Of a stretch of DNA of 64,000 nt, positions 6,322 to 59,169 are shown piece after piece; position 1 is the first letter of the stretch, and the number at the start of each line of letters is the position of its first letter. The translations under genes were made by a program, and so were the position numbers. Source of the DNA: Marsupella aquatica (Eukaryota; Plantae; Marchantiophyta). The stretch lies in contig OZ316899.1 of NCBI GenBank assembly GCA_973895155.1, positions 1,821,573-1,885,572 on the forward strand, read 5' to 3'. The notes under the pieces were generated by a model. It was not told the origin of the DNA, ran no database searches, and worked only from the letters and a program-made list of their open reading frames with translations.

Positions 6322-8990
6322 TGTGACGCCGATGACATGGTCCTTATTCTATAATCTGAGTAACTAGGTTGCTGTATGCAAGGAGTAGCTATTGATACCG
6401 CATAACAATTAGCAAGCTGGCAATAATAAGGGCAATCATGGTGTTAAGAGTAGGGATAAAGGTATTTCAGCTTGAACACAACCAAGGCAGACACAGTTGA
6501 GGTAGTCACTGTCAAGGCCATAAAGGAGAAGTTGGGGAAGAGAGGAGGAAGCGAGTCTCCATAACTGAATATGAAGTTGTGTGGTATGGTGATTGGTCTC
6601 ATGATAAAATTTGAATGTCTTGGGTGTGTAGCTTCATTTTGTTAGTTAGGTTAGTGGTTCATAGTCTAGTCTTAGAATGTTAGGGAAATAAAAGGCTATG
6701 TCGCGCGTGGTTGGCAACCATATCTCGTTCAATATGTCACCAAATCCGGATCTGTAAAGAGCATTGGAAAGATCTGGTCAAGGCAAGTAAAATCGATATA
6801 AAACACTTGGGAAACGGAGGTGTATTAAGGAAGATACGGCCTGATTAGTGTGACGGGTTAACTTGTGGCCGGAATTAGCGGATTCGGCTTCAGTTTCGGG
6901 TTAACCCAAGCTCGGCCACGGCTTAGCTTAGGTAAGCACGGCTTCAGCTTAGCTTAGGTAAGCACGGCTTCAGCTTATCTCAGGTAAGCACGGCTTCAGC
7001 TTAGCTCAAGTAAGCACAGCTTCAGCTTAGGCTTAACCCGGGTTCGGATTAGATTGATCCCGAGTTAGCCTAAACTCGGGCTCAGGTTAGCATAGGTAAG
7101 CTCGGGTTCGGGCTCAGCTTAGGTTAGCGGTTAGCGGATAGCGCATAGCGGGTAGCGGCCTAACCCGAGACCACGGGTTAGCTCTACTCGGGTTAGATAG
7201 GATAGCTAGGTTAGCCGAACTCGGGTTAGCTATGTAACTCGGGTTAGCGCAGCAGTGAGTACCCCCTCTCGGTTGCGGGGGCATAACTCTCTGTGTATTT
7301 GACCAAATTGGCTATAATTGACCTCGTTGGAAAGAGGAGCTCAAGCCGCTTCCAACGCTGCTATCCATGCAGCAAATGGTTGAATAGAGAAATCAGGAGA
7401 GGAGGCGCAAGCTCGCAAAAACCATGGAGGAGGGCCAAATCCGAAGACATAGCCAATTCGAGATAGAAATAAAGTTGCGAGTTAGGGTTCAGTAGTTAGA
7501 GATAGTGGCGGCTCTGTTAGGGCTGGGATGGGGCTCCAGCAGCGTAGTATCCACCCATTTGGGCTCAGTATGAGAGTATATAGAGCAGCCCCCGATAGAG
7601 GCAGGGGGGGACTTCAGTTGTGTGATCTCACTTAGACTGAGTAGCAGGGAGGAGATCTGTGCAAGCAAGGCTGGACTTGGACGCTGTGTGTTGGGGAGAG
7701 CTTGGTTGTGCTATTACTCAGGGAGTAATCAGCCAAGCTTCACAGCTGCAACGGGTTGCTAGGTTTGCGAGTTGGATTGTGGCTCTTTCTAGTGGGCAGC
7801 ACAACTGGGTTCTTTTCCCCCGATACAGAGCCTTGGTGATAGGTGATGTATTGGTGATTGTAAACTGTGGGGAGGATGTCAATTTGATTTGTGGTGAGCA
7901 CGTTAGGGAGGCTGAGACACTGATTGAGGGGCAGCAGGAGGAGCATTTACAATTCAGTCTGGCAAGGCTACGTGATCCATGGGGAGTCCCGGCCTTTGTC
8001 TGGTGGAGAGCACTAAGGGATCTATGGCCAGAGCGGAGCTTGCAGGGCAAGCATGAGGCCGGGCCTCATTGCAGTCTGGGGTAGATCGCCGTTAGGCCTG
8101 GTACCAGCTTTGAAGTCGAGTCAACTGTGCATGCGTAACTTGACATTCGGAAATGGAGGTGTGAGATCTGTATGTGCCCCCAAGAATGAAGTGCAGTGAA
8201 GGAGGTTGAGTTCAGGATTGAGTTTGCAAGGCAAGTACGGGATTGGTTCGAGTCCAATCTGCCGTCGCAATCTGGAGTGAGCCGGGCTCAGGTTCAAGAT
8301 TGAGCTTGCATGACAAGCACGGGGCTTGCGGGGCAAGCACGTCGCAATCTGGAGGAGACAGCCTTTGGGCCTAGTGTTCGGATCAAGTGTTCTCAATGAA
8401 CTATTGTGCACATCTTTGAATCTAATTGAGTTTTCCTCTTCGGCCTCATTTCTCTCATGGATGTGTGTGTGTGTGAGGCAATCTGAGTGTATGATGGGAC
8501 TAGCAGCGCCACTGAGAGGTGTACAGGGTGCATTGAAGCCGGCTGGGTGAGGACTGTCATAGCTCTGATTGCTGAGAGTGGAATGGCAGAGTGGTGGGGC
8601 AATGGCTTAGAAGTCCCTAAGCCGGGAATCAGTCAGGAGTCACTGGTTTATGGGTACATTCCGGCAGCGGAATAGAAACATACCTATGACAGTAAGCATA
8701 CATATAGACCTATGCGCACCGTAGCGCTAGGCCCTGTGTGTACGGGCCCGATATGAAGACCCCTTCTCACCAGAACTATCATGAGCACAGATCTGATCCC
8801 AACCTTGGTTCCTTGGGATTGAGCGTGGGTGATGTGTGATAGAGTCTTGCTATGATAGTCTGGTGTTAAGGGCATAAATTGGTGTTTACCGGCCTTCACA
8901 ACATCCCTTCGTGATCCTCGGGTACAAGGAGATGGTTTTGGCACCCATAGTGACGTTTTTGGTGTTAAGACCCATGTCAATCGCGTGACA
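6322..8990 (-). mobile_element. Solo LTR (2669 bp) of an unrelated LTR-retrotransposon family
   Basis: Perfect 5-bp TSD CAATG (6317-6321 and 8991-8995). TG...CA termini with imperfect inverted ends (TGTGACGCCGATGACATGG / CCATGTCAATCGCGTGACA). TATA-like GCTCTATATAC on the minus strand near 7580. The host gag continues across it. Confidence 0.88.
6921..7034. repeat. Tandem repeat, 26-bp unit x4 plus a partial unit, followed by degenerate CTCGGGTTAG repeats to ~7250
   Basis: Unit GCTTAGCTTAGGTAAGCACGGCTTCA starts at 6921, 6947, 6973 and 6999, with 0-3 mismatches and no spacers. Confidence 0.9.
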
Positions 8991-9099
8991 CAATGTCAGC
9001 ACTGCTAGCTCTGAGGTTCCAATGGGTCAAAACTCTTTACAAATAGTGATTTGAAGGTATGCCAGATGGCTTGATCTTCCACATCCAATGCTCTGCATG

Positions 9100-11300
9100 T
9101 TTCTGCAAGCCGCCGGATGTCCTCTGGCCATTGTCCTCCTGGTAAATCCTTCTCCCTTGCCAGGGCTGCCTCCTCTTCCTCCCTGCGTCGTTCCTGAAAC
9201 TCCTGTGCCGTCTGTTTTATGTCGTCAAAACTTGGGGGAGCGACATCTGGTGGGGGAGACTTGGGGCTGCTTTGCTGGGTTGGGTCCCCTCAAACTACTC
9301 TTGGAAGAGTGGTGATGAACCTGCCACAGGTCCTTATTCCTGGAACATGGTGGTCCGACCCGTAGCCGGAGTCATCATTGTCGTAGCCTTCTATCGCCTC
9401 CTCCTCGGCTTGGACTACCGGCTCCCCCCGCTACTGTCCTGGTCCTGCCGTGAACACAACCCCACAGATCATGGGTCCTGGTTCCTCCAACTTCCACGTT
9501 GATCTCATCTTCTCCCTGTCGTGACCAGGGGCCTCGGGCTGCTTCTCCTCGGCTTCGGGACTTGAAGCTCCTACATACATTCGGACTCCCGGCTCGTGTT
9601 CCGGCCTCCTTCTCTCCTTGGCCCCGGTAAAGGGGTTTTCCATGGTAAGTTGGCTAAGGCTGACTTCGGAAGTAGTATTCTGTACTAGCCCCGTTGCCAC
9701 TGCCGTTCTCCTTTCCTTCTCCAACAATTTCAGCAGATTTTGCATGCCTGGTTGCTGCATCAGCAAGTCCTCCTTCCTCGGCCTAAACACCTGCTTGATT
9801 GTAGGATTGTCGGGCTGGGTCGGTTTCTCTATTGTCGGCCTTGGTTTCGGAACCTCCTCTGGTGCTCTTGCCTGCAGGGGTAGTACCGGGGCGCATATCT
9901 GGCTTCGGGCATACCGATACAATAGCAGTATGTGATAACCAAGTCGGGACAGGCTTCCCATGCCGATCACTAGCTGTTCCTCCTTCAAGATCTTCTTTAG
10001 TTGGGTGAGGAGGTACCCGTTGTAGTCTCGGCTTGGGTCTAGCCTCTCTGCCAGATAGACTTGTGCCTTGCCGATCTCTGCCCTCGGCAAGTTACAATGC
10101 ATGGTCACACGCAAGAAATCAATCATTTCTCCTATGTGCGGGTTGGTGCAGGTGTTTTGGAAGAAGCCATTCTTTGTTGATGGCCCTGGAAACAACCGAA
10201 ACTCCTTGTCTGGCAAGGTCTTCCTGGTATCTACTTTGGTCTTATTGCCCATCGGCAAGCCAAACTCTTCGGCAATCACCCGGGGAGTGAGATAGAAATC
10301 CTTCCCATACACCCTTGTGGAATTGGTCTCGGGCTCCCACGAATTCCAGTAAGTCTGAATCCGGTACCTCCGGCTTCAGCCATGGTAACTTTACGAATGC
10401 TTTCAAGCCGGATCTGGCCATGAAGCCCTGTTATTTCTGAGTCTGCATAGCCGTAAAGCATGCATCCTCTTCCCGCGCAAAGTGTAATTGCACCTCCTCG
10501 GGGAGGGTCGTCGCCCAACCTTTCCAGGTGTCATCTCTTGTTGGAACGGCATTGACGGGGTCAACCTCCTCCTCTTTGGCTTCCGCCTGCCTCCTGCTTC
10601 CCTGCTCTGCTGGTTTCCTGGGTGCCGCCAACCTCGTTCTTTTTGCAGGGGTGGCTTCTTTGTTGTTGTTCCCTTTTCTCTTCATAGCGGTTGCCGTGGA
10701 TGTTTCTCCTAGCATGGTTGCCTTTGTCCACCCGTCCGTGCTACCCTTCAACTCCTAGTGTATGTCATTGCAGTGGTTGATGGCCTCTCGGATGCCGACT
10801 ATCTTGTTCTCACAAAATAGAAGATCGTCGAGTTCATCGGCAGTAGGCGTCCACAAGAATTCAGCTATAATGATTTTTCCTCCTAAGAAAGCAGACTTTT
10901 GCAGCTCCCACAGTCGAGCAAGCTCCTACCGTTCTCAAGCCGCTCTCTCTGATTCTTCATCCTGGTAGGTCCCAATGTACTCAGTTGCCCGTTCTAACAT
11001 GCATCCCCAAAAATGAGTTGCTTGATTGACGTTGCTCGTACCCCTCTTGAGTTGATCGTCGGTATCTGCTTCCACCCCGAGTGCTTGCCTGAGCAGCGGA
11101 CAGCAATTGGCCTCCCGTAGTCGTCCGCTTGGCTTGTGTTTGCAAATGAGCCGCCAGTCCTTGCGCTGGGTCCTTACCCCCCCCTTGGCTGGTCTTCCTT
11201 CCCGTTAGTAGCCGCTGGTACTTAGCGCGCCCTAACCCTAATCGTGTTTCCCCCGGCGTCCTTACTTTCGGCCTCGGCTTGGGTTCCATAGTCACCCTTA
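9100..11300 (-). pseudogene. N-terminal and middle part of the family-B LTR-encoded accessory ORF
   Basis: ORFs 9431-10312 and 10431-10751 (minus) are near-identical in translation to ORFs 13697-15131 (+) and 39583-40449 (+). Confidence 0.85.
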
Positions 11301-36838: not shown

Positions 36839-38840
36839 ATAATCAGATTATCAAGGATAAACTGACTCGGACCCAGGAAGAGTTGGCCAATGCGATCAAG
36901 GAGAAGGAGAAGTGGAAGTGAGAGCTGAGAAACGCAGAGGAGGCCCACATAGCAGCCAGCAACCGGGCCATGGCGGAGACCCAAAGAAGGGAGAGGGCAT
37001 TGAAGGGGAAGCTCGAGGATATCCGCGGAGCCCTTGAGCAGAAGGAGACCGAGTTAGGGAAATTCTATCAGGCGATTGTGCTACGACAGGAGCTTGCATC
37101 CCTGACGGCCAGCTTCAAGGCCGACCTCCGTGAGAAAGACGACCAGCTCAACCAGACTTAGGCCAAGATGAATAAAATGGAGTTTGAGGTCATAACAGAG
37201 CTCGACAAGGAGCTAAGAGCAACCCGGGAGGAGAGGGCTACCTTAAAAAAGGAGCTAGAGGAAGCCCAGAGAGAGTTGGAGGAAGCCCAGAAGGAGCTGG
37301 AGGAGGCGCGTAAGGACCTGGACAAATTGCAGGAGGAGTTGAAGGAAAGCACATGGAAGATGGAGAACTTACAGCGGCGAGCCGACAACCAAATGGAGCG
37401 GCTGAAGAAACAGGCCGCAATATTTAAGTGCTTGGCTTCCTCAAGTCCCACTCCAATAGGGACAACCAAGTTGCCAGGAGTAGTACTGGCCAAAGGACAA
37501 GCCGAGACACTTGCACCGGTGCCGGAGGTAAGTGGCAAGGTGAAGGGGCCAAGCTGCCAAAATAGGGAAGAAGAAAAAGCAAAAACCTTTTGGGTCAGGG
37601 AGTAACACGGCTTCTCAAGCCATCGTGACCAAGGAGGTAAACCCGACACCAACCTCAAGCAGGGTCACGGTAGGGGATCCAACTGTCCTACAAGGCAGGG
37701 ATGGCAAGGGCAAAGCCTGAATGCTCAGTGATGAGGCCGGTGTACCGAATCCACCACTAGAGCAGGTCGGGGAAGCCGTAGCCATATCGGAGGCCGTGGC
37801 CGATGCTGAGGCCGAAGCCGAGGGGGGACCCAGTCAGGCTGATGGAGAGTTGACTCGGTCCATAGCAGGTAATCTGTCAGAGGACAGACCTACGGTAGTG
37901 GCTGCGGAGGAAGTGTTGGGGCGTCCATTGAGGATCAGCCACCACTACCATGACGGTGGTGGAGGGCCACTCCTTTTAAGGAGGGCAGACGTGGAGGGAG
38001 GAGGCGTGAGTGGGCAGGGCGGGCTCAGATCTCCAAGTTTAGAATTAGGATCAGGATCGGGAGGCGGCCCTGACACTTAGCTTAGTGGGATTGCGGATCC
38101 ACTGGTAAGAGCAACACTTGTGCTCCTGCCTCGCTGTACATAGGTAGATTATGGTCAGGTTAGATTAGGCTTACGCTGCAAGGAATTGGGTGGATCCACT
38201 GCCAGGATAAGTACCTGGGCAGCGGGGGGGTTCAGGGCCTTCTTCCTTAGCAAGTTTTTAGTGCACCAGTAGGGCTGGGATCAAGTAGTTAAAGAAGCTC
38301 TTGGTTAGTTATGATGTGTATATTCATGTTTCCTCATACCTAAGAGATGAATAGAGTTGGGCTCACGGCTTAGTTCGCAGATCTTGTGTATGAGAAGTAC
38401 TGTTTGTATGGCAAGTGCATGGTATAACTCAGTCAGAAGGAGTCATTTTGCTATTTGTGTGTCGCATTAACTTGTTTGAAGATTGCCCACATCAACCAAG
38501 AAGGGAGTAAGCAAGGTAGTAAGAGTTGGATGTGTCGAGCTGAGAGAGGTCTTAGCGGCTTACCCAAGCCAGTTGGGGATCATTCCGGCGGCGGAATCCA
38601 AACATACCTAAAGGAAGACCAGGAGAGGAGGACAAGGGAAGGCATAGAAGAGGCCGGCTACCTATCTCATGACCCTATGAAGGATCTGTCCAGTATATGT
38701 GTGTAAAATGTTAGTAGAAGGAAGTTAGCAGCGTTCCATGCCTCTAAGCCGCGAAACCGGCCTCGCCAAGAGCAAAACCTACGAGAATCGGCTTGTGCAG
38801 GGGGGTTTCTTGGGTTCAGGGAGCCAGGGGACGCACCACA

Positions 38841-45389: not shown

Positions 45390-46829
45390 GTATGCTCAAA
45401 GTCAGATCTTTGCCCCGGTACTTCCACTGCAGGCAAGGACCCCAGAGGAGGTTTTGGAACAGAGGCCGGCAACAGAGAAACCAAACCAGCCCGAAAGTCC
45501 TACAATCAAGCAGGTGTTTAGGCCGAGGACGGAGGACTTGCTGATGCAGCAACCAGGCATGCAGAATCTGCTGAAATTGCTGGAGAAGGAAAAGAGAACG
45601 GCAATGGCACAGGTACAAGACACTCCTTCAGAGGTCGGCCTAAGCCGACTCATGAAGGAAAACCCCTTTATCTGAGCCAAGGAAAGAAGGAGGCCGGAAC
45701 ATGAGCCGGGGGTTCGAATGTATGTAGGAGCCTCAAGTCCTGTAGCCGAGGGAAGGCAACCTAAGGCTCCTGTTTAGGAGAAACAGAGGGAAGAAGATAG
45801 GCTAAAAGCCAGAGGAGGAACTAGGACCTGCTAGCTATGATCGGCAGGAGGCCGTGTTCACGGCAAGACCAGGGGAGCAGCGGGGGGAGCCGGTAGTCCA
45901 AGCAGTGGAGGAGGCGGTGGAGGACTACGGCAATGATGACTCCAGCTACGGGTCGGACCATCATGTCCCAGGAATAAGGACCTGTGGCCATTTCATCCCC
46001 ACGCTTCCAAGAGTAGTTTGAGGGGACCCCACCCAGCAGAACAGCCCCGAGTCCCCCCCGCCAGATGTTGCTCCCCCGAGCTTTGACGACATAAAATATA
46101 CGGCACAAGAGTTGTAGGAGCGACTCAGGGAGGAAGAGAGGGTAGCCCTGGCTAGGGAGAAAGATTTACCAGGGGGAGAATGGCCAAAGGACATCAGGCG
46201 GCTTGTAGAAAAACAAAGCAGCCCTCCAACCATGATAGAAGAAATCCGCAAGGCGGCTTGGGAACAAAGGCCACGATGGTTGATGCCGATGACTTCTACT
46301 CACTCCACATATGCTAAAGAAAGAGCCATGGAGTACGGGGAGATGTGTGGAGAACTTGCGCTCAGCATCTTTGGGGAGGAGTTGGACCAGGGACCTTTTT
46401 TCCAGAGGGAGATGTTGGAAAAATGCCAATTAGAAGAAGCGGTGGCTTTGGAGAGAAGAAAGAAAGACAAGGTCATCCGTTGACTTAGGGCAAGGGAAGC
46501 CAAGGTGGAAGACCTGAAGGCAGCTAAGAAAGCCCAAGATGAGTTGCGGATTAAGCGGCATGAGCTAAACATCATGCAAGGGCAACTGGATACCGCTTAG
46601 TCTGATAATCAGATTATCAAGGATAAACTGACTTGGACCCAGGGGGAGTTGGCCGTTGCGGTCAAGGAAAGGGAGAAGTGGAAGCGGGAGCTGAGGGACG
46701 CAAAGAAGGCCCACATAGCAGCCAACAATCGGGCCATGGCGGAGACTAGGAGAAGGGAAAGGGCGTTGAAGGGGGAACTCGAGGATATCCGCGGAGCCCT
46801 TGAGCAGAAGGAGGCCGAGTTAGGGAAAT

Positions 46830-46874
46830 GGGTAATTGTAACGTGCAAGCAAACAATAGAATTTTTGCTTGCAC
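46830..46874 (+). repeat. MULE left terminal inverted repeat
   Basis: GGGTAATTGTAACGTGCAAGCAAACAATAGAATTTTTGCTTGCAC versus the reverse complement of the right end, GAGGTATTCTATTGTGCAAGCAAATAGGAGTTTTGCTAGCA; 18 of the first 24 nt match, including an 11-nt exact core. Confidence 0.8.
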
Positions 46875-47050
46875 AGGCAAGATTTCACCTTGTATTGGGC
46901 CCCAAAAAAGATGTGGAATCTTCCTCGCTAGCATGAAGACCCTGTTCAATCATTAAATAATGACACAAGAAATGCGTAACGATGAGTATTTTCTAGTCCC
47001 TTGAATGCACTAGATCCATTTCCGATCAGTTGAAATAACATTTTCTTCAG

Positions 47051-50000
47051 GCCAGCAAAATTGCTAGTCTAATGACGCCAACACATTGAGCCACTCACAC
47101 AAGGTAGGGCTCCACGTACAGGCTTCCACATGTGAAAATTCCCACCCGAGGAAGAGTAATAACAAAAAAGTACTACGTAATTCCCGCGTGACAAGAATCA
47201 ACGTGTCATTACTGTCTAGGAAAGGAGGATTAAGGCCGTTTGGACACTAATTAAGTCACTTGCAAGTGAACGGGACAATTACCGTTCGAACCAGAGGCAA
47301 ACCCAAGGCGGCGAACCGTCCACTTAAACAAAGCCAATCACCCAAAAACCACCAGTCTTCCAAAGCATTCTCCCGATCACTTCCACCGCGTCCAACTCAA
47401 GCTCTTTCATTCAGAACTGCTATCAGTGTTCCAAGTTCTCAACGCTCACCAGATCCAATTTAGGTAAGCGCGGTTCTATGGTTCTGAGCTATTTTCAGGG
47501 AATAACTCTCCGACAAGGCATGACATTCATCGTATTTCATCGTGAAAAGTGTTTCCATTTGTTGAATGTTGTTCTTCTTAATCACTGTTTGGGTTTCGTA
47601 AGTGCAGAGAAATGTCAGGGGTTCCAAGCAATCCTCCTCAAGGGAAATGGCAACTTGAGATCCGTCGTTACAACCCGGCGACGGATGGCCCTCTAGAAGA
47701 TGACTCTCCGCCGAAGCAGAAACCCAATGCAGAGACTGTGAAGGTCTCCGCAGATAGCAGTGTCCCAACCGCACTTGGTCAATCTGTTGGATCGTCATCA
47801 TCAGTGAGGAGAACACCGACTCCTCCAAAGTCAGGTCCAGCAAAGTCTTCACCAAAGCCGAAGGTGGATACCACACAGCGCAAGGCCGTATCGAAGAGGA
47901 AGAGGCTTGCAGAAGAGGAGCAATATTGGATTGATAGGGAGATCCATGACTAATGGACCGAGGAACGTCGCCTCTTTGGATTACGATTCTGAGTCAGACA
48001 CTGACTCCAATGCATGGAAGGCGGCCAGCCCCTGAGCGGAGAGTCAGGTTGTGGGTTTACTGAAAATTTTGTAGTTTCAAGCGAATGACATGTCCTCATG
48101 TACTTTCAATATGTATGAGAAGTAAAGTTTGTGTGTTCCTTTCCTTTCTCTGTGTTGCCCTTGAATGACATTTTGTCCATAGTACGTTTATTTGAGCCCC
48201 ACTTTCCTTGAATATATCGTTTATTTGGGAGACACAGATGGACCCTTCCCAGACTAGCGATATCGCTAGTATAGGACTGACTCTACATTTCAGATTAATC
48301 TTCGATGGGTTCATCTTAGATAATCAATTTGGCAGAGTATTACCTCAACAACTTGAGGGAACAATTCCCTCCCAAGAACACATCCTGTCACTGTATAGTA
48401 AACTTTATTGCTCATATTGCATCCTAAACTCCGTTGATCAGACTAGCAATCTCGCTAGCAAAAAACTGGCGTCATTTTGATGATCAAACCCTGAACTACA
48501 TACATCCTTGTCCATAGGTGAACACGGCTGGAAGTCGGACATTTCTGTCCGGATGTTGCAGACTTCCTAAGACTAGAGAGATCGCTAGCCATAAACAACG
48601 AACACAAACACCATATAATATAACATTATGGACCTTGCTAACATTATGGTTCACTCGGTGAAAACAGATTAATGTTTGTGAAACCACAAACTCGAGTAAT
48701 CCATCCCACTACCCTATAATTAGCATCTCCAATAAATGACTAGTCCCCTATCTATAATGGAATTAAACACCTCACTTCCCCAACAGTCAGAATCAGCTGT
48801 TTGACAAGGTCGTCCTTCTCCAGGTTGAGTGAAAACTTGTTTAAATACACCCACAATAGATGTTTACAAGACATGTATGGTTTCCCTCGTGTATGCCTCT
48901 TATAAAAGTCTTCACAAGAACACGAAGGGAAACAACAGATTTGCACCCAATATGTGTGCGGAACTTGTGAATCAGTCTTGTGAGTGGCGATCAAGTATCT
49001 CCAACCCCATCCATTTCCGGTAGTTACCTTCTCATTTCCAACAACTCTCATGTATTCTTGTGTAGCGGAAACGATGCGCTTGAGCAACTCTGGAGTATTG
49101 CTGAAACGCTGACGTGCACCCTTACCATTTTGGGTTTTCAACCGACGGTCCACATTAGTTAGATTGATTTGTTCGGGGAATGAGTTAACATCAATTCATA
49201 GGTTGACCCAATTGGGGGACGGGAACTCCCCAACTTGATTTGCATCCACATAGGACAATCCACTGATCTGGAATCCTAATCCCAACAGAAAATCTATCTC
49301 GGGATGGGAGAGGCAAGTCCCACGCTGAACCTTGAGCGACTCGGGTGGGGGGGGGTAGTTGAGCTAGAGTTCTGCGTCCTCGGCTCTTGTGACACTTATT
49401 GTTAGGACAGAGGTACAACAATTGGCAATGTGGAGATGATAATCGCAACCCGTGAATGGCGACTCCAACAATTCCCCCTTGGGCGGACTTACATCCAGTC
49501 TCCTTCATGAGATTTCTACATTCATCTCTTCCAAAAACGCTTTGATCAACCAACCCATTGCAAACAGGTCCAGCACCTCTACCGCTCCGCCTGAGATGCC
49601 AGGTCCCATAAGGAACATCAACCTCTCGGATGGAAGGGATCCTTTGGGGGGCATCCCGATGGTCATCCCCGACATCACACGAAGGTTGAGTCCCCATCTT
49701 CTCGGTATCATTGACATTACGACTTGCATCATCACCATCGTCATCTGAAATATGGATAACTCCAGCAAAGCAACCTCCGACAAGGGTTGCCAAAGTTGTA
49801 TTCTTTGCTATTTCTGGGTCCGCAAAAGTCTTTGAAACATTGACGAAGCGGAATTCAGGATAGAGATTACGCCTTTTTAGTCCTGAAGGAGAAGCTATTG
49901 TGCGTGACACTTTGTCATGTCTGTGGGAGTCATTCTCATGGATTGTAGTTGAAGCTTTCCCTTTCCTCTTTGTGGATGTTGTTCGGATATTGCCATGTAA

Positions 50001-53000
50001 TGGTACTGTTCTATAGAATTCATACTTAGCTGAAGACTCAAGCAAAAGATTTGCTGCCTTTTCGTAAGCATCCATGGATCCCATAGCATCGGCGTTCCTA
50101 TATGCTAATTCAAAAATGTCGGCCCCTGGCCTCTGTGAACACCTTTACTGTAGGCAGTTAAAAACAGGAATTTTCCCCGCAGCACAATTCTGGTCCACCT
50201 CACATGCTTCAATCAATCCCACTAGTTTCTTCATTTGGTAGGATCTCATGGATGCATGGACTGATTCCGCTCCAGTACAATTTGGCATCAAGGCTGACTC
50301 CATTGCGGTTTGTGTCTGCAAAAAAGTCCCCAGTCAAAAACGGACCTGATATGCTAGCGAGGTCACTAGCAAAAAACAATGACGTCAAAGAGAAAGGAAA
50401 TAGGACACTTACAACGCGGATGAAGTTCCCCCACTGCCTCCACCTCACGACCCACCAAGATATCCATCCTTGGAGAGATTTCAATTTCCCAGCATAGCAA
50501 TTTCCTTCCTTCCACCAACGATGGATTTCGTCAGCAACTCGGTATGCCTGAACATATGTTGGTGCTGTTCTCAGCCTTTCCCATAGTTTATAGTGCTCTC
50601 GATGATGATCTTCCCGAATACCCTCCAATGTGTGACGACGAAGAGATTGAGCAAAGTGAAAGGCGTCACCGTGCTCCTTCTCTGGGTGACGGACACCTCA
50701 AAAAAAACATTCCAAATGGCGATCCATCCAACCTTGGCATTATCGGCAATAAATCCTCCAATGAGTGGGTCATCCACGTCATGATCAGAGGCAACTTCAA
50801 TCATATATCTCCATGCAGTTTCAAGAGACAAGGAGTCCTCCGCACGGAGCTCACAAGTGAAGATGGTACAAAGGGACCTATAATTATGGTCGTACACATG
50901 GGCGCTGAATGTCAGCCACCCAGTGCTTATTCTCCGCATTACATCAGAACTGACCCATGCTCCTTCCAGCTCACCTCCACTCCTCATCTGCCTGAGAATA
51001 TCAACACCAGAACTGGGCCATTGGTACTCATTTTGAAGACATGAGCCCTATCGGTCTTGCTCCCCTGGCTAGGGAAAAGGCACCTCTGAACGTAAGGAAA
51101 ATTATTCCGGGCTTGCATCTCACGAAGAGAATCCAACTCACCTTTTTTTGGGTTATCCATTTTCACGCTCCGGAATATGGCCTGGAATTTCTCAATAGTG
51201 GACACAACCTTCATCGATTCCCAAATCTCTCTCCCTTCTTCTTTCGATAGTTTTGAAGAAGACTCTGGATGCAAAAGAGAAACCAGGTTTCCTATAGACT
51301 TGTTAAGAACATGCCCTGGCGTACACACGGGATTCGCTTTATGAACACCAGAAACTATCTCCTTCGCCTGCTTTTTTGCCAATTGAGATTTCCCTTTCCA
51401 AACAACGTGGTCATGGAAACCCATGTGAACAGCCAATCAAGACATATGTTTTGCAACATTTGACTCAAGAGACGGCTTAGGATAGACGTACAAAAGTTTA
51501 GCCAGACATTCACGGATGCAGAGAGGCCTCTCCTCACAGAATCCGCACACCAACCCTCCTTCCTCCACAAGCTCACCAAGATGAAACGGCTCAGTAAATT
51601 GTCCCTTTCCTTGGAAGGAAGAATCGTTTTTTGAACCGGTGTGCTTCAACTTTCTACAGACCAGATTTTGACATTCAAGTACACTGGCACATCTGGCTTT
51701 TGACACAGACCAGTGGTTGCGAGGTTTGAGATTAGCTGAAGTTGTGAGAAGTCTCGTCCATGGGTAGCCGTCATTATCCCTATCCATGTCCTAAAGACCA
51801 TATCCTCGACAAAATTGACCTTCGACTGGAGGAAGCTCAAAAACGCAGTTCCTGTTGTATGAAGAGTCTGCACTTGAATCTCCTTCCAATTGTTTCCCCT
51901 CCGGAAATTTGCCAACTCGCTTGACCCAGTAATATTGAGGAAGGCATCATATGCACTAACTCAATAAAGAACTGGCTGAGATTGAAACTTGTTTTGACTC
52001 ACTGCTTCAAAAACGGCTTTCTCAAAAGACTTCGTCGACACAGAAGAGAGATCCCAACCCACACTCTCAAAGGAGATGTCGATAATTTTGGGTACTGCAG
52101 GTGACGGGCGAGTTGGCGATTCTGGATCTGAAACATTGATATGTGCAATGTCATCCTTACATGAGACTAGCTCTACAGCTGAACCACACTTCAGGTCCCA
52201 AGCTCTCTCTGGCAATATTCCTGAACCATTATCCGGCACCTCATGACTTCTGGATCCATTCTGAGAGTAAAGAAGGAACAATTTCCAGATGAAATCATCT
52301 TTCAAAAGCCCAAACCTCGATGAGAGGAAAGACTCCTTGATAGAGATAATATTATTCTTCAAAACATCCAGAACAACAACATCACCCGTCTTCTTTCTCT
52401 CGATCACAACCTTCGATCCCAAAGAAGGCATGCTGACAGTTTTGGACATTACAGTCTACAACAATCCTCAAATGTGAGATACTTCGCTCTCTTCTTTCTC
52501 CAAATACATATGAGGAAACGTGCTTGTGTAGGTGTTGGACTCAACGTATTTATTTAATAAATGCCTCTTATTCCCGTTATCTGACCATTATATTGTCTTA
52601 TATGAAACTATTTATGGAATGATAAAGCTAGCAAGATTGCTAGCTCAATCAACCATGTAAAATGGCTCAAAAACATACTAAACAACCTTCACAAGTTCAT
52701 GGATTTAGTGACCATTTTTGGCTAGCGATGTCGCTAGCAAAAATAGTTTCTCGTAAGTGACCATTATGACCGTTTATATCCATTGGAATTGGTCAACGGG
52801 TACCTATATTGTCAATGGTACGGTACCTTTGTCATTAGCTACTTTTATTTCAGTCGTGAGTTAGGTTGTTCGTATTTCAGGAAGTACATGTATACTTGAT
52901 GGTGTCTGCAAAATGATTGCAAGGAGAGTCGTATAGAATATCTGTATCTCTTTTCACGACCGGGCGCTGCATTCAGGTGAAAGCAACAGATGAGGGTACG

Positions 53001-56000
53001 ATTCTATCTTTGACTGGAAGATCGATTCTCGGGGTTCTTTACGTTTGCAAAGCGTGTCGCCCTCGACCTTGACCTGTTCATACCCTTATCACTTCACGGA
53101 CCCCCTGATGGAGCCATTGTCTTCACCCGAGAGCTTGTCATCAATAGGATCGTTCAAGTCAGTCGAGTCAAGCCGAAGGGAGACAAGGTCTACAGTGAAC
53201 AAGAAGGCGCTCCAGGCGGGATTGAAAACACCGAGGAGGCCCAAGATGGTGAACCAAGTAGATGTTGTGAATCCTACGTTTCAACCTGGAGCTTTAGAAC
53301 CCTATTCTGTTGTCATCAATCACCATCTTTTCCCTTTTGGAAATGACAAATTTGGATTCCCCCTCGCTCCTCCGAGGATTCCCCTTTGCAGAATGCAAAA
53401 CATGCAAATCGTTTGGTCCTTGCAAACAATCTTGACTGCGATCGAGACACTCAAGAATGAATTCTGGACGGAGGGATACATCGAGGATGCACCTCGATTT
53501 TACGTACAAATGACCGGCAAAGATGGCCATGTCCAGATGTGCGACGATGGAATTCGGGAGTGGTGGGATGACATGTGGATTCTTTAGAATGAAGAATTTG
53601 AGAGGGAATGTGATTCTCACAAAGCTTTCAAAATTTTGAAAGACAAAATGTTCTGTGTTTTTGATGGAAATAATCATCTCTACTCATGGATGCAGCTTGC
53701 GGACGAGAATCCACATGATGCCAAATATCATCCTCGAGTTGTTTGCCAAATTTTCAAGGGTGACAAGAACTCATTCGTGCAGATTGAGTCGGCGATGCAT
53801 GCGTTGAATAGGTTTGTTTCTTTTCCTTCAAGCAGTGAATTGTATATAAAATTCTATCAGTTCCTCTTGTTAGCAATCTCGCTGACCTGTTTCTTTGGTT
53901 CGGGTTGACTCAATGTCACGTTGAGAATTCTTGGGTCCTTGAAGCAGAGAGAGTCCAGAAGGTGCTCAGCAATGACCTTTCTGTATACAAAGATATCATC
54001 GATGCAGACAACTACAAACTTTTCCAGCAAAAGATGGCAAATATCAGGAAACCGGCTTGATATTCGAAGAACATGACACTCGACGCCTGCACATACATTC
54101 TGTCTGCTGCTAATATTGCAGCGCAGACGGAAGATTTGAAGAAGAAGTTCTAGTTGAAAGAAGCGCAAGGAGAACCTCTTTCAAAAGCTGCGCAAGACAT
54201 GGCTATGAAAGACATGATGAAGGAGCAACTAGCAGATTGGAATGTGAAGGTGCCAAAGATTGGACCTCTCCTGAATCCTGAGTTTGGTGACTTTTTCCAG
54301 AAGTGTGTTGAGATGCACAACTACTGCAAACATGAGAGGAAGGAGGCCCAACGAACAGATAATAAAGGAAGGGGTAATGTGTCACGTGGTCTCGATTGTG
54401 CGAGGCTATTTACGGGTGTCTCTTCGTTGACTCCGCAGCTCAGATGTGTACTACTCGAGGCACAATGCAGACCTGAGCTTTGCAAGAAGTACTTCCACCC
54501 TGGTCAATTCTCGGACAGCGAAACAAAACTTTGGCTTCACCGATGGGCTGTATGGGAGCAGGTCGAGTCAATTTGTTCTTTGCTCATGTCTGAGATTATT
54601 TCAGAGTTGATCCCAATTGTTCCAGATGCAAGGATCCTTACTTCGTCTGAGAAGACAAAGCCATCGCTGATCCTTGACATAGAGGAGGACTTTGAAGATT
54701 TCCAAACGAGAGTGAAATCTCATTTTTTCAAACAGATATGGCCACCAAAGTTGGGTGAGAAGATTGACATCTCACTTTTTTGGAGGAGGGCAAAGAGATA
54801 TACGTATCATTTTTTTGTGGATAGAGAAGTTGCTGACAAAACATATTGGTGGTCCTATCCTGCTTGCTTCTCGCCTTGGATAGCAGGAGTGAAAGAGGAT
54901 CTAACCTCCGTTAAATATGGAGAGTACTCGATGTACCCATGTGAGGGAGTGGAGGCTCCAAGGAAGATGAGTGAGTGGGAAGTCCTTCACTGTCCATGGT
55001 ATTTAGAATCAGACAAATGGGCAGTGACATTTGACACAGCAGAGAAGGCAGCCTTTCATATGATAAATCAAGGCTTGATACCAGAGTCGTACATTACAGA
55101 GTCCAAATTAGCTCCTACAGAAGCCGAGGCTGGCGGATGTGAGGCAATGGAGAAAGCTGTTCTTGGTGTAGCTGCCATTGTCGACCGGAGTAGATCGAGG
55201 AGACCTCGGAAGGTGCCGGTGAAGGACGCATCCAAAGATGGATCAGTCTTGTCTGGGAAGCAAAGTAAGTCTCTTTCTCCCCTTTTTTTCATACCTCAGT
55301 CGGAGTAATTTTGTCTCAGTCACCTGTCTGACATTAACATGTTTTTCAGAGAAGAGAAAGGTTGCAGCCTCTGGGAGTTTGAAGAGTGGGGCGGATGATG
55401 GAGAAGAACCCAAGTCTCCTGATGTTAAGGTCACAACAAAATCTGTTGTGGACCTGGGTTCAATCAAGCGTTTAAAGAGGAAGTGTCATGTCCAAATTCT
55501 CTCCGACTCGGATGAGGAGGAAGCATGCGTCGCTCAAGGAGTAGCACGAATGTGTGGTCTTAAGAAGGACGGTGAGAGGCATTTCTTGGCAAAGAGCAAT
55601 CTCATGGAAACTGCAAACTCAATTAGCCAGAGGAAAGTAAGATCTCCCTAGATGGGCAATGCGGATCAGTGGTTGTCTGGAATGAGCAAATCAAGCGAAC
55701 ATCCAAACCCAGTGATGATCAACGGAAAACATTATGCTGGAATTGGTGCTCACTTGGGTTTCATATTCCTTCCCACGGGTCATCGAACGAGTGTCACAGA
55801 CCGGGAGGTCCCGGAGTGGAATGTTTGGAGTGAGAAATTACCATATTATTTCTTTGGAGTCATGCGTCCGATGCTTGCCGACGATGGTTATGTCGTAGTT
55901 CTTCACAGCTCTGACTATAACCATATGAGGCAAAAAAATTCTGCTGTCGAGCAGAATAACAAATTTAAACATGTCCGACAATATTTGGTTTTGCTTTCAT

Positions 56001-56084
56001 CTCCTTTGTATCAGGCAAATATGGACATCGAGGTAAGATGTCCTCAATATTTTTCGTGCAATTTTTGCTAGCGAGCTCGCTAAC
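47051..56084. repeat. Dispersed 18-bp palindrome RCTAGCRA-NN-TYGCTAGY, 9 copies within the MULE
   Basis: Copies start at 47051, 48253, 48442, 48572, 50353, 52627, 52721, 53869 and 56067; all lie in subterminal, intergenic or intron sequence. Confidence 0.85.
48752..52449 (-). pseudogene. MULE-family transposase: GCM/WRKY-like Zn domain, DDE core, C-terminal SWIM finger; one intron at 50316-50412; several stops and frameshifts
   Basis: Cys/His pattern C..VLECQN..C...LVCGFC...C..EC...HMGFHDH. Core WVSSDVMRR..GWLTFSAHVYD, GFIADN. After splicing the GTAAGT...TGCAG intron, MPNCTGAESVHASM (catalytic Glu motif). SWIM CSCEDF...SCKHLLWVY. Confidence 0.82.
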
Positions 56085-56653
56085 CAAAAGTACCCATTTC
56101 TGACATATTCTCGTTTTCAATTCAGGTAGTTACTCTCATAATGGATGTCTTCTGCAAGGTGGAATTCTGGGCAAAAGTCCCAAAACATACAGGATATGTT
56201 CCAATGACTTCCTCGAAGGATGCCCGCCATAAATTGATGTTGAGTGTTTGCTACCCAAAAACTGATCTTAGCCCCAGGGCGGCTTTTGCAGGTTCCAATA
56301 GATTGTCAGTTAGGTTCATGCAAGCCGTAATGGAGATCCTTACTTTGCCAAAGGACATTGTCATTGATTGGACTGTTGGAGATGGAAGTGCTTTTGCCGC
56401 TGGGGAATACGCTGGGAGATTTGTTGTGGGTGTTGAAGATAGAGACATTCTTCATCTGTGTGCGCAAAACACTTTGGCAAATGTGTTGGATAGACACGCC
56501 CAAAAGTTGAAAGGGGCCGCAGACCCGAAGAACGATGATCCCAATGATGAAGGATCGGATGATGAGTTCACCATCCCAGGAGATGATCAGGGAGGACCTT
56601 CAGACGAGAAGGATGAATCCGACCTGGAGCAAAGCACTTGGCCTTTGATGTAG
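53108..56653 (+). pseudogene. MULE cargo gene (~1,100 codons, 4 exons): ParB-like N-terminal motif plus C-terminal beta-class N4/N6 DNA-methyltransferase-like domain
   Basis: Introns 53812-53903 (acceptor mutated to CGG), 55265-55349 and 56033-56125 join the ORFs in frame. VFDGNNHLYSW resembles the ParB/Srx DGxHR motif. EILTLPKDIVIDWTVGDGSAFAAGEYAGRFVVGVED resembles the MTase motif X-I-II block. In-frame stops at 53585, ~54050, 54151 and 55649. Confidence 0.65.
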
Positions 56654-57363
56654 AATTCCCTATTTGGTGTTTTTCTTTTATTTGTAGAATTTTTGGATGT
56701 GTAGTATTGATCCGATGCTGGTGATTTCTTCAATAATAGGCGTTCGGATTGGTTTTTGGAGGAGAGATTTCGTCTTCAGAAAGAAATCGAGGATCATTTT
56801 CTTGTGACCCCTGAGAAGGGATTTGCGCTTCCTTGCTATGCTGAAAAGACTGCAAAGGAGGTTGATGAAGTGCCCGTCATTTTGACTTGGGAGGGGAAAG
56901 GTCTGCGGTCAGTGAGGGGTGCTCGGAAAGCCCTTTACTGCCCTCAGTTCATAGATGATGAGGCTGGGACTGTAGCACAATATGTTGACAATTCGGCTGA
57001 GGAGACTGATAGGGAGTCGAGTAGCAATCCTAGTAATTCCTCAGATGATTTGGAATCAGAGGATTCTCAATGACTCATGGTCAATTTCAGATGCAATCTC
57101 ATTCCAGAAGATATTTGTCATACCAAAGCTTTATTAAAGATGGATTGTGAAAGGTTTTTTGACCTGGTTTTGTTGATAGTGATGATGCCTTTTCATTCAG
57201 TTCAGTGTAGTGAAGATCTTGATTTTTTTGTTTGTGAATATTTAAGTATCTGCATTTCCCTTTTTTGATACTGTTTCACAGTATATATCGACAATCTTAC
57301 TTGGGAATCTGCCTTAACTACCCTAAAGTTAGGCACAAACTTGCCTCGCTAGCCTGCTGTCCT

Positions 57364-57404
57364 TGCTAGCAAAACTCCTATTTGCTTGCACAATAGAATA
57401 CCTC
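57364..57404 (-). repeat. MULE right terminal inverted repeat
   Basis: Its reverse complement aligns with 46830-46874; abuts the TSD at 57405. Confidence 0.8.
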
Positions 57405-59169
57405 TAGGGAAATCCTATCAAGGGATTATTGTGCTGCAGCAGGAGCTTACATCCCTGACGGCCAACTTCAAGGCCGACCTGCGTAAGAAAGACGACCAGC
57501 TGGATCAGACTTATGCCAATATGAATAAAATGGAGTCTAAGGTTGCAGCGGAGCTCGACAAGGAGCGAAGAGCAACCCAGGAGGAGAGGGCTACCTTAAA
57601 GAAGGAATTGGAGGAAGCCTAGAAGGAGCTGGAGGAGGCGTGCAAGGACCTGGACAAAGTGCAGGAGGAGTTGGAGGAAAGCACGAGGAAGATGGAAAAC
57701 TTACAACGGCGAGCCGACAACCAAACGGAGCGGCTAAAGAAACAAGCCGCAATATTTAAGTGCTTGGCTTCATCAAGTCCAATTGGGGCAACCAAGTTGC
57801 CAGGAGTAGTACTGGCCGAAGGACAAGCCGCGACACTCACACCGGTGCCGGAGATAAGTGGCAAGGGGAAGGGACCAGCTGCCAAAATAGGGAAGAAGAA
57901 GAAGCAGAAACCTTCTGGGTCAGGGAGTAATGTGGCTTCTCAAGCCGTTGTGACAGAGGAGGTACAACTGGTGCCAACCTCAGGCAGGATCACGGTAGAT
58001 CCACCCCTAGAAGGCGGGGATGGTAAGGCCAAGGCCGGAACAATCAGTGATGAAGTTGGGGTATCGGATCCTCCACTAGAGCATGTCGGGGAGGCCGTAG
58101 CCGTATTAGAGGCCATGGCCGATGCTGAGACCGAAGCCGAGGGTGGACCCAATCAGGCCGATGGAGAGTTGACTCGGTCCGGGGCAGGTAATCTGTCAGA
58201 GGACGGACCTATGGCAGTGGCTGCTGAAGAAGCATTGGGGGCGTCCATTGAGGATCAGCCACCGCTACCATGATGGTGGTGGAGGGCCGCTCCTTTTAAG
58301 GAGGGCGGACGTGGAGGGAGGAGGCGTGAGTGGGCAGGGTGGGCTCAGATCTCCAAGTTTAGAATTAGGATCAAGACCAGGAGGCGGCCCTGACACTTAG
58401 ATTAGTGGGATTGCGGATCCACTGGTAAGAGCAACACTTATGCTCCTGCCTCGCTGTACATAGGTAGATTACAATTAGGTAGATTAGGCTTATGCTGCAA
58501 AGAATTAGGCGGGTCCACTGCTAGGATAAGTACCTGGGCTGCGGGGAGTTCAGGGCCTTCTTCTTTAGCAAGTTTTTAGTGCACCATCAGGGTTGGGATC
58601 AGGTAGTAAAAGAAGCTCTCGGTTAGTTATACTGTGACCCTTGTGTATATTCACGTTTCCTCATGCCTAAGAGATGAATAGAGTTGGCCTCACGGCTTAG
58701 TTCGCAGATCTTGTGTATGAGAAGTACTGTTTGTATGGCAAGTGCATGGTATAACTCAGTCAGAATGAGTCATTTTGCTATTTGTGTGTCGCATTAACTT
58801 GTTTGAAGATTGCCCACATCAACCAAGAGAAGGGAGTAAGCAAGGTAGTAAGAGTTGGATGTGTCGAGCTGAGAGAGGTCTTAGCAGCTTACCCAAGCCA
58901 GTTGGGGATCATTCCGGCGGCGGAATCCAAACATACCTAAAGGAAGACCAAGAGAGGAGACCAAGGGAAGACATAGAAGAGGCCGGCTACGTATCTCATG
59001 ACCCAATGAAGGATCTGTCCAGTATATGTGTGTAAAATGTTAGTAGAAGGAGGTTAGCAGCGTCCCATGCCGCTAAGCCGCAAAACCGACCTTGCCAAGG
59101 GCGAAACCTACGGGAATCGGCTTGTGCAAGGGGGTTTCTTGGGTTTAGGGAGCCATGGGACGCACCACA

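Follow-up and report, generated by a model that had tools for sequence, protein, structure and literature searches.

We analyzed a 64,000-nucleotide stretch of DNA from the liverwort Marsupella aquatica (contig OZ316899.1; hereafter the window, numbered from its first base) and found that the four-exon gene at 53108-56653 is a decayed copy of an accessory gene, distinct from the transposase gene, of a Mutator-like cut-and-paste transposon of 10.6 kb. Natural homologues show that the intact protein of this family has ~1,090 residues and consists of an N-terminal domain with a predicted ParB/sulfiredoxin fold, a middle region of ~450 residues and a C-terminal domain with a predicted beta-class amino-DNA-methyltransferase fold. 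The element further carries a set of palindromes in its non-coding DNA. Taken together, it seems probable to us that the accessory protein recognizes its own element through these palindromes and acts on its DNA or chromatin, the methyltransferase-like domain having a non-enzymatic role.

The flanks of the element, 46605-46829 and 57405-59169, are contiguous in a paralogous repeat of the same window (36839-38840), where they overlap by 9 bp. The insertion therefore comprises 46830-57404, that is, 10,575 bp. A perfect 9-bp target site duplication, TAGGGAAAT, was found at 46821-46829 on the left and at 57405-57413 on the right, and the same nine bases are present once, at 37055-37063, in the empty paralogous site. 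Alignment of the two termini revealed imperfect terminal inverted repeats of ~45 bp, located at 46830-46874 on the plus strand and at 57360-57404 on the minus strand. The duplication, the terminal inverted repeats, the empty site and the high copy number documented below show that the element is mobile, and because the target duplication is 9 bp long, it points to the Mutator superfamily. A preliminary description of the window, made from the sequence alone, had taken the gene for the cargo of a DNA transposon, which is in good agreement with these features. The repeat that received the insertion encodes coiled-coil open reading frames (ORFs), and its uninterrupted, ~89% identical paralogue lies 10 kb upstream. 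We also observed a hairpin within the left terminal repeat (GTGCAAGCAAA...TTTGCTTGCAC), with a core, TGCAAGCA, similar to that of the internal palindromes, TGCTAGCA.

To place the gene among its relatives, we compared the window with three other loci: L001, a Logan contig from a third lineage; L002, from Calypogeia fissa; and L003, from Riccia sorocarpa. All named homologues come from liverworts (C. fissa CAM6082147.1 and CAM6096077.1; R. sorocarpa KAL3696265.1 and KAL3701808.1), and at least 12 dispersed copies are present in C. fissa. In the window, tblastn with homologues found a single copy, on the plus strand, with ~1,091 codons and three introns of 92, 85 and 93 nucleotides, all of which have GT..AG ends and compatible phases. 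The eukaryotic introns attributed to the gene in the preliminary description were thus borne out. Exon 1 (53108-53811) encodes the ParB/sulfiredoxin-fold domain, the fold being predicted from the homologous segment L001:593-1156, and is followed by intron 1 (53812-53903), for which the length of the exon junction agrees with the annotated Calypogeia protein P0091. Exon 2 (53904-55264) encodes the conserved middle region, in which no known family can be recognized. Intron 2 (55265-55349, phase 1) was placed by the frame continuity of the ORFs 54154-55308 and 55238-55651. Exon 3 (55350-56032) encodes a basic/acidic linker and then the first half of the methyltransferase-like domain, while exon 4 (56126-56653) encodes its second half and an acidic tail. 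Intron 3 (56033-56125, phase 0) therefore lies inside this domain, and its position is identical in all three homologous loci, each from a different lineage.

That the ParB-like, middle and methyltransferase-like parts form one polypeptide appears well supported, since overlapping annotated proteins join the N-terminal part to the middle region (P0091) and the middle region to the C-terminal part (P0048, P0071 and probably P0022). In Riccia L003, the three parts are ordered on one strand and a SWIM-bearing fragment lies on the other. Similarly, the head-to-head pair formed by this gene and its divergent neighbor is conserved in Calypogeia L002, with 30-56% protein identity.

As the stop codons of the window gene were not repaired, the domain analysis was run on intact natural homologues instead. 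For comparison, exon 4 of the window searched alone against Pfam matched PF01555 (N6_N4_Mtase) with an E value of 0.063 (13.7 bits, profile positions 166-211), and its best sequence match in the PDB was the beta-class enzyme M1.HpyAVI (E = 0.24). The homologue on L001, which is 41% identical, matched PF01555 with an E value of 4.9e-5 (23.8 bits). A profile made of the two sequences, window and L001 exons, retrieved 69 proteins from 1.84 billion representatives, including the genuine PF01555 enzymes P0055 (548 bits to PF01555) and P0065. The family members P0043, P0060 and P0071 scored 24.5, 25.7 and 27.6 bits against PF01555, the gathering threshold of which is 26.7. P0071 (R. sorocarpa KAL3701808.1) bears the UniRef name "Trimethylguanosine synthase"; its only Pfam match is PF01555, and the name looks like an automatic misannotation. 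Furthermore, a seven-sequence profile of the whole domain found M1.HpyAVI and CcrM in the PDB, both with E values of ~9e-7, CcrM being matched over 180 positions.

The fold prediction is in agreement with these matches. The AlphaFold model of the annotated C. fissa protein P0011 (39 aligned sequences; predicted local distance difference test score [pLDDT] of 82) matched CcrM with a Foldseek E value of 1.3e-11 and a Z score of 18.3 over 216 residues. M.BceJIV, MboIIA, M1.HpyAVI, the rotifer N4CMT, PvuII and RsrI came next, with Z scores of 15-17, and MT-A70 enzymes were clearly below the beta-class enzymes, at ~11. According to this model, the C-terminal domain is a beta-class N6/N4 DNA-methyltransferase fold of the Rossmann type, in which motif IV precedes motif I. 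In the preliminary description, the lack of a predicted Rossmann fold binding S-adenosylmethionine (SAM) at 55700-56500 would have counted against its reading; such a fold is predicted for the natural homologue.

We then looked at the individual motifs. The motif I region is conserved as PGDIVxDWxxGxG....GRxVIGxE, the Phe of FxGxG being replaced. The seven aligned sequences all share the Gly of PGD, the second Gly of GxG (G195) and the Glu (E212), and most members keep the GxG pair. In the window, motif I reads DWTVGDG (56366-56386) and is followed by GRFVVGVE (56414-56437); MRPMLADDGYVVVLH is located at ~55862-55906. Translation placed all the motifs quoted in the preliminary description where it had reported them. 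Its view that FxGxG is degenerate has to be revised, as the GxG pair and the downstream GRxVIGxE are conserved in homologues. Because this pair and the acidic motif are conserved, SAM binding may survive in the family.

The degeneracy of DPPY, by contrast, was confirmed. The DPPY position is FLPT in the window (55766-55777, within HLGFIFLPTG) and FLPN, SLPN, ALPT, CLPN, QLGT, DLPS, DMPT or DPPT in homologues, the latter being kept in one Riccia lineage. An aromatic residue at the fourth position was seen in none of the 11 members, of which only three keep the Asp at position 1, so that the catalytic signature of motif IV, (D/N/S)PP(Y/F/W/H), appears in no member of this set. Changes of this sort abolish catalysis in DPPY, NPPY and SPPY enzymes and are found in inactive partners such as METTL14 (EPPL). 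As far as can be judged from the motifs, the loss of motif IV thus argues against catalysis and leaves room for SAM binding. This bears directly on an alternative view, in which an active DNA methyltransferase (N6-adenine or N4-cytosine), delivered by the ParB-like domain, would mark its own element at or near the palindromes, each arm of which holds the hexamer palindrome GCTAGC or GTTAAC, like a restriction-modification site. Several observations favor such an enzyme: conservation over the long term has kept the entire beta-class fold together with the SAM-binding motifs, and one Riccia lineage has retained DPPT. In addition, self-methylation is the published reading of the algal counterparts (PMC12477816; bioRxiv 10.1101/2025.02.11.637652). 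Given the state of motif IV, however, we consider an active methylase unlikely.

For the N-terminal domain, we used the AlphaFold model of the homologue L001:593-1156, which was built on a 24-sequence alignment and reached a pLDDT of 91 and a predicted template modeling score of 0.83. Foldseek against the PDB returned nearly only ParB-CDP/CTP, sulfiredoxin, Noc, KorB, PadC and SbnI, with probabilities up to 0.99. Superposition on ParB, Noc and KorB gave Z scores of 8.3-8.8 and root mean square deviations of 2.2-2.9 Å over ~97 residues of the ParB nucleotide-binding N-domain. In the AFDB clusters, the model matched ParB/sulfiredoxin and DGQHR proteins, and one match was a 1,005-residue "DNA methylase N-4/N-6 domain-containing protein", aligned via its internal ParB-like part. 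Additionally, TIGR03187 (DGQHR) gave weak matches to this domain, with a best E value of 0.008. The predicted structure is clearly that of a ParB/sulfiredoxin fold. Together with the C-terminal matches, this upholds the ParB-like plus beta-class N6/N4-methyltransferase-like architecture put forward in the preliminary description.

Nearly all of the 24 aligned homologues carry the sequence DGNHR, and a few have a substitution in it. Judged by its sequence, DGNHR would be of the same motif type as GERR in ParB, GCHR in sulfiredoxin and DGQHR. The preliminary description had singled out DGNNH in the window. This sequence is present, at 53663-53677, and it is a mutated form of the family motif rather than the motif itself; the window copy departs from the motif as a mutated pseudogene.

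The middle region encoded by exon 2 is 41-45% identical to P0001 and P0002. It matched no Pfam family, no solved structure (including in a search of its profile against the PDB) and nothing credible in the Atlas, where unrelated helical proteins alone were returned, at low recognition. ParB proteins read parS through a helix-turn-helix domain. If the accessory protein reads DNA sequence, any reading domain that escaped detection would sit in this middle region.

The copy in the window is dead. Its translation contains zero frameshifts and exactly four in-frame stops, as had been counted in the preliminary description: TAG at 53585-87 in exon 1, TGA at 54058-60 and TAG at 54151-53 in exon 2, and TAG at 55649-51 in exon 3. 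To compare it with other copies, contigs of four public runs were aligned to 53045-57073. They covered the gene with thousands of short pieces at 90-99% identity, which indicates that the accessory-gene family is very high-copy. The window reads A, T and A at 54060, 54151 and 55650, and most or all contigs have G, C and G instead; the other copies thus have sense codons at these positions, and three of the window's four stops arose through A-for-G or T-for-C changes. Indeed, most differences between the window and the other copies are of these two kinds, a bias that would fit the deamination of methylated cytosines in a silenced repeat. At 53902, the window has G and all aligned contigs have A. 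This G spoils the best candidate acceptor of intron 1, so that the splice acceptor has probably been lost in this copy. Conserved residues were also substituted, with DGNHR changed to DGNNH and VRxL to VWxL (VWSL, with Trp for a nearly invariant Arg). With four nonsense codons, a probable acceptor loss and these substitutions, the window copy is a pseudogene. The preliminary description had called the gene domesticated by a transposon; the gene instead belongs to the transposon itself, as an accessory gene, and the family is mobile and high in copy number.

The palindromes of the element are 18-19 bp long and of the type GYTARCGR-N2-3-YCGYTARC. Allowing up to 3 mismatches, GCTAGCGAnnTCGCTAGC occurs 7 times in the window, compared to 0.12 expected, and all occurrences are inside the element, between 48253 and 56084. 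The same is true of the 8-base half-site: of its 8 exact copies in the 64-kb window, none falls outside the element, and two are close to the ends of the element, one at 96 bp from the left end and one at 58 bp from the right. Three palindromes (48253-70, 48442-59 and 48572-89) are located beyond the 3' end of the transposase-like gene, which occupies the minus strand of the element. A fourth, GCTAGCGAGGTCACTAGC (50353-50370), lies inside this gene, outside its conserved coding blocks, and is probably intronic. Two 18-bp palindromes (52627-52644 and 52721-52738) are intergenic, between the divergent genes, and the last one, GCTAGCGAGCTCGCTAAC (56067-56084), falls within intron 3 of the methyltransferase-like domain. 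The palindromes of the window thus avoid coding sequence and are confined to the non-coding DNA of the element, introns included.

A similar placement was found in the other lineages. The counterpart of intron 3 holds a palindrome in L001 and L002 as well. Calypogeia L002 has ~14 copies of GCTAGCGAGCTCGCTAGC or GTTAGCGAGCTCGCTAAC. Both corresponding introns hold one, and the stretch between the two genes has three perfect copies spaced by 105 bp (8821-9048). In L001, GTTAACGGnnCCGTTARC occurs upstream, in both corresponding introns and downstream. In Riccia L003, the palindrome is GCTAACGAnnnTCGTTAGC, with a spacer of 3; six or seven of them follow one another at regular intervals of ~113 bp over 9046-9751, as a tandem array that lies within the gene but in its non-coding DNA. 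In the four loci, a common degenerate palindrome pattern was counted 4, 4, 12 and 14 times, compared to at most 0.02 in shuffled sequences. Both the sequence and the spacer of the palindromes differ between lineages. An architecture and a placement that are kept while the sequence differs would be expected of a coevolving protein-site pair.

The palindromes might also be sites of the Mutator-like element (MULE) transposase, of a subterminal or internal enhancer-like kind, in which case the ParB/methyltransferase-like protein would act elsewhere, for instance as an NTPase or nuclease helper of transposition or against host defense. Many DNA-transposon transposases bind subterminal repeats, half-sites are found near both termini, at 58-96 bp, and the related motifs GCAAGC and GCTAGC occur in the terminal repeats. 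However, the palindromes are not concentrated at the ends and are spread over introns and the promoter region. Moreover, in red-algal elements of another superfamily, a ParB-like accessory gene is likewise accompanied by adjoining tandem inverted repeats (bioRxiv 10.1101/2025.02.11.637652). We thus regard this explanation as quite improbable. That the ParB and methyltransferase resemblances arose by chance in a lineage-specific transposon protein, as the weak matches of the window itself (E values of 0.063 and 0.24) and the lack of a Pfam match for the N-terminal domain could suggest, can for practical purposes be dismissed, since profiles, folds and motifs of several homologues independently speak against it.

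We propose that the accessory protein would recognize its own element through the palindromes, as ParB recognizes parS, and would then act on the DNA or chromatin of the element, either for escape from silencing or for assembly of a transposition complex. For the methyltransferase-like domain, a role as a SAM- or DNA-binding module or as a partner subunit would be more probable in this clade than one as an enzyme. We also entertain, tentatively and with more doubt than confidence, a more specific form of this proposal: a self-recognition module in which the ParB-like protein would be loaded onto palindromes specific to the element, the specificities diverging between sub-families as in plasmid partition systems, and in which the dead methyltransferase domain serves as a decoy or partner for a host amino-methyltransferase or for the silencing machinery. 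Through it, the transposon would control its own epigenetic state. The N4-methylcytosine (4mC) enzymes that liverworts have, DN4MT1a/b, are presumably possible host partners.

Several points weigh against the proposal that the protein recognizes and acts on its own element. The predicted structures are those of homologues 34-58% identical to the window translation and not of the broken product of the window. The alignment and profile of the N-terminal domain gave no match to Pfam ParBc (PF02195) and no sequence match in the PDB. A helix-turn-helix reading domain of the ParB type was not identified, the middle region matching nothing in these searches. The palindromes taken by themselves could equally be transposase binding sites. 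The MULE identity of the transposase is tentative, being based on the 9-bp duplication, a SWIM-like motif and a feature score of 0.85. Finally, the four public runs behaved as DNA, with no spliced joints.

ParB-plus-methyltransferase accessory proteins have already been published for green, red and brown algal transposons, and the kind of protein is therefore known. In Ectocarpus, Sola1-1_Ec32 encodes a 1,104-residue ParB-like plus DNA-methyltransferase protein opposite the transposase (PMC12477816). As judged from published descriptions, as for all algal proteins here, the liverwort protein resembles it in having the same two bacterial-type domains, a similar length (~1,090 residues) and a place inside a DNA transposon on the strand opposite the transposase, and self-targeting is proposed for both. 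Unlike Sola1-1_Ec32, which belongs to Sola1 elements with a 4-bp duplication, the present family is Mutator-like with a 9-bp duplication, its named relatives are liverwort proteins, its motif IV is without the catalytic signature, and it has a dedicated set of palindromes that differs between lineages.

In the red alga Bostrychia, Plavaka elements carry the accessory genes PAG2 (PF01555 plus SET) and PAG3 (ParB-like plus 2-oxoglutarate oxygenase), adjacent to tandem inverted repeats; the genes move between transposon superfamilies, and homologues are present in Chondrus Mutator elements (bioRxiv 10.1101/2025.02.11.637652). As in the liverworts, ParB-like and N6/N4-methylase domains are thus found in transposon accessory genes, with inverted repeats adjoining the ParB-like gene. 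However, the red-algal domains are on separate proteins, each with a SET or a 2-oxoglutarate oxygenase domain, whereas those described here are fused via the ~450-residue middle region.

The liverwort protein can also be compared to the prokaryotic and phage fusions in which a ParB-like part comes first and a beta-class methylase last, and it shares with them a DGxHR-type motif and the beta-class motif order. Prokaryotic methylases that fuse a ParB N-domain (PF02195) to PF01555 have ~400-450 residues, a DPPY motif and no introns. In contrast, the liverwort family contains introns, has a large middle region as an insertion, and its motif IV is degenerate. The similarity to phage proteins is weak, the best E value in a tblastn search against phages being 2e-3, and the searches turned up no prokaryotic or phage sequence close enough to be a donor. 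The old horizontal acquisition invoked in the preliminary description is not supported as it was worded; it may be suggested by the bacterial type of the domains.

Among eukaryotic proteins, the rotifer N4CMT (PDB 8s9m) also has a beta-class fold of presumed bacterial origin, with a Z score of 16.6 to the model. Liverworts themselves have such proteins: DN4MT1a/b of Marchantia are beta-class 4mC enzymes (bioRxiv 10.1101/2021.02.12.428880), with a fold that is likewise of presumed bacterial origin. Unlike the accessory protein, N4CMT and DN4MT1 keep SPPY/TSPPY, are host genes and are without a ParB-like domain. DN4MT1 was absent among the matches of the two-sequence profile in the 1.84 billion representatives. 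With respect to function, the nearest analogy may be VANC. This anti-silencing protein of the Arabidopsis VANDAL elements, which are Mutator-like, reads short motifs of its own element, and protein and motif co-diversify rapidly; VANC is also cited in the Bostrychia preprint. Both would be MULE-encoded accessory proteins that recognize short motifs in their own element and alter its epigenetic state; their protein folds are unrelated, so that the analogy would be a functional one only. In the searchable literature, we found no report of ParB-plus-methyltransferase systems in liverworts or any other land plant, of the loss of the catalytic tetrapeptide in such proteins, or of intronic palindromes that differ between lineages.

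Two neighbors of the accessory gene deserve mention. The transposase-like gene, preserved in pieces at 48752-52449 on the minus strand, is 30-56% identical to the minus-strand gene of Calypogeia, contains a SWIM-like CxC...CxH motif at 48752-49153 and is transcribed divergently from the accessory gene, head-to-head. Neither its pieces nor the intact 716-residue Calypogeia ORF matched Pfam, PF10551 included. The ten best family-carrying Atlas feature matches of the 716-residue counterpart are all MULE (PF10551), with a score of 0.85, a lead that this protein may be nearest to MULE transposases by language-model features. Downstream of the stop of the accessory gene, tblastn with homologues revealed an ORF of ~105 codons (56726-57073, plus strand), which is 38-46% identical to ORFs at the matching place in L001 and Calypogeia L002. 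It carries the motif F.LP.YAEK.AK and a serine/acidic tail, had no family match, and may be either an additional, fifth exon of the accessory gene or a separate small gene, the third of the element.

Transposon proteins that recognize and act on their own element are rare, VANC being the classic case, and the algal accessory proteins have recently been flagged as a possible new class. The family described here extends the algal ParB-plus-methyltransferase accessory class to liverwort relatives, and thus probably to land plants. It would also offer experimental handles: a protein with an apparently intact SAM pocket and no catalytic tetrapeptide, and cis palindromes that vary between lineages, allowing specificity-swap binding tests. 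The family could also be relevant to how 4mC and N6-methyladenine arose or are modulated in early-diverging plants.

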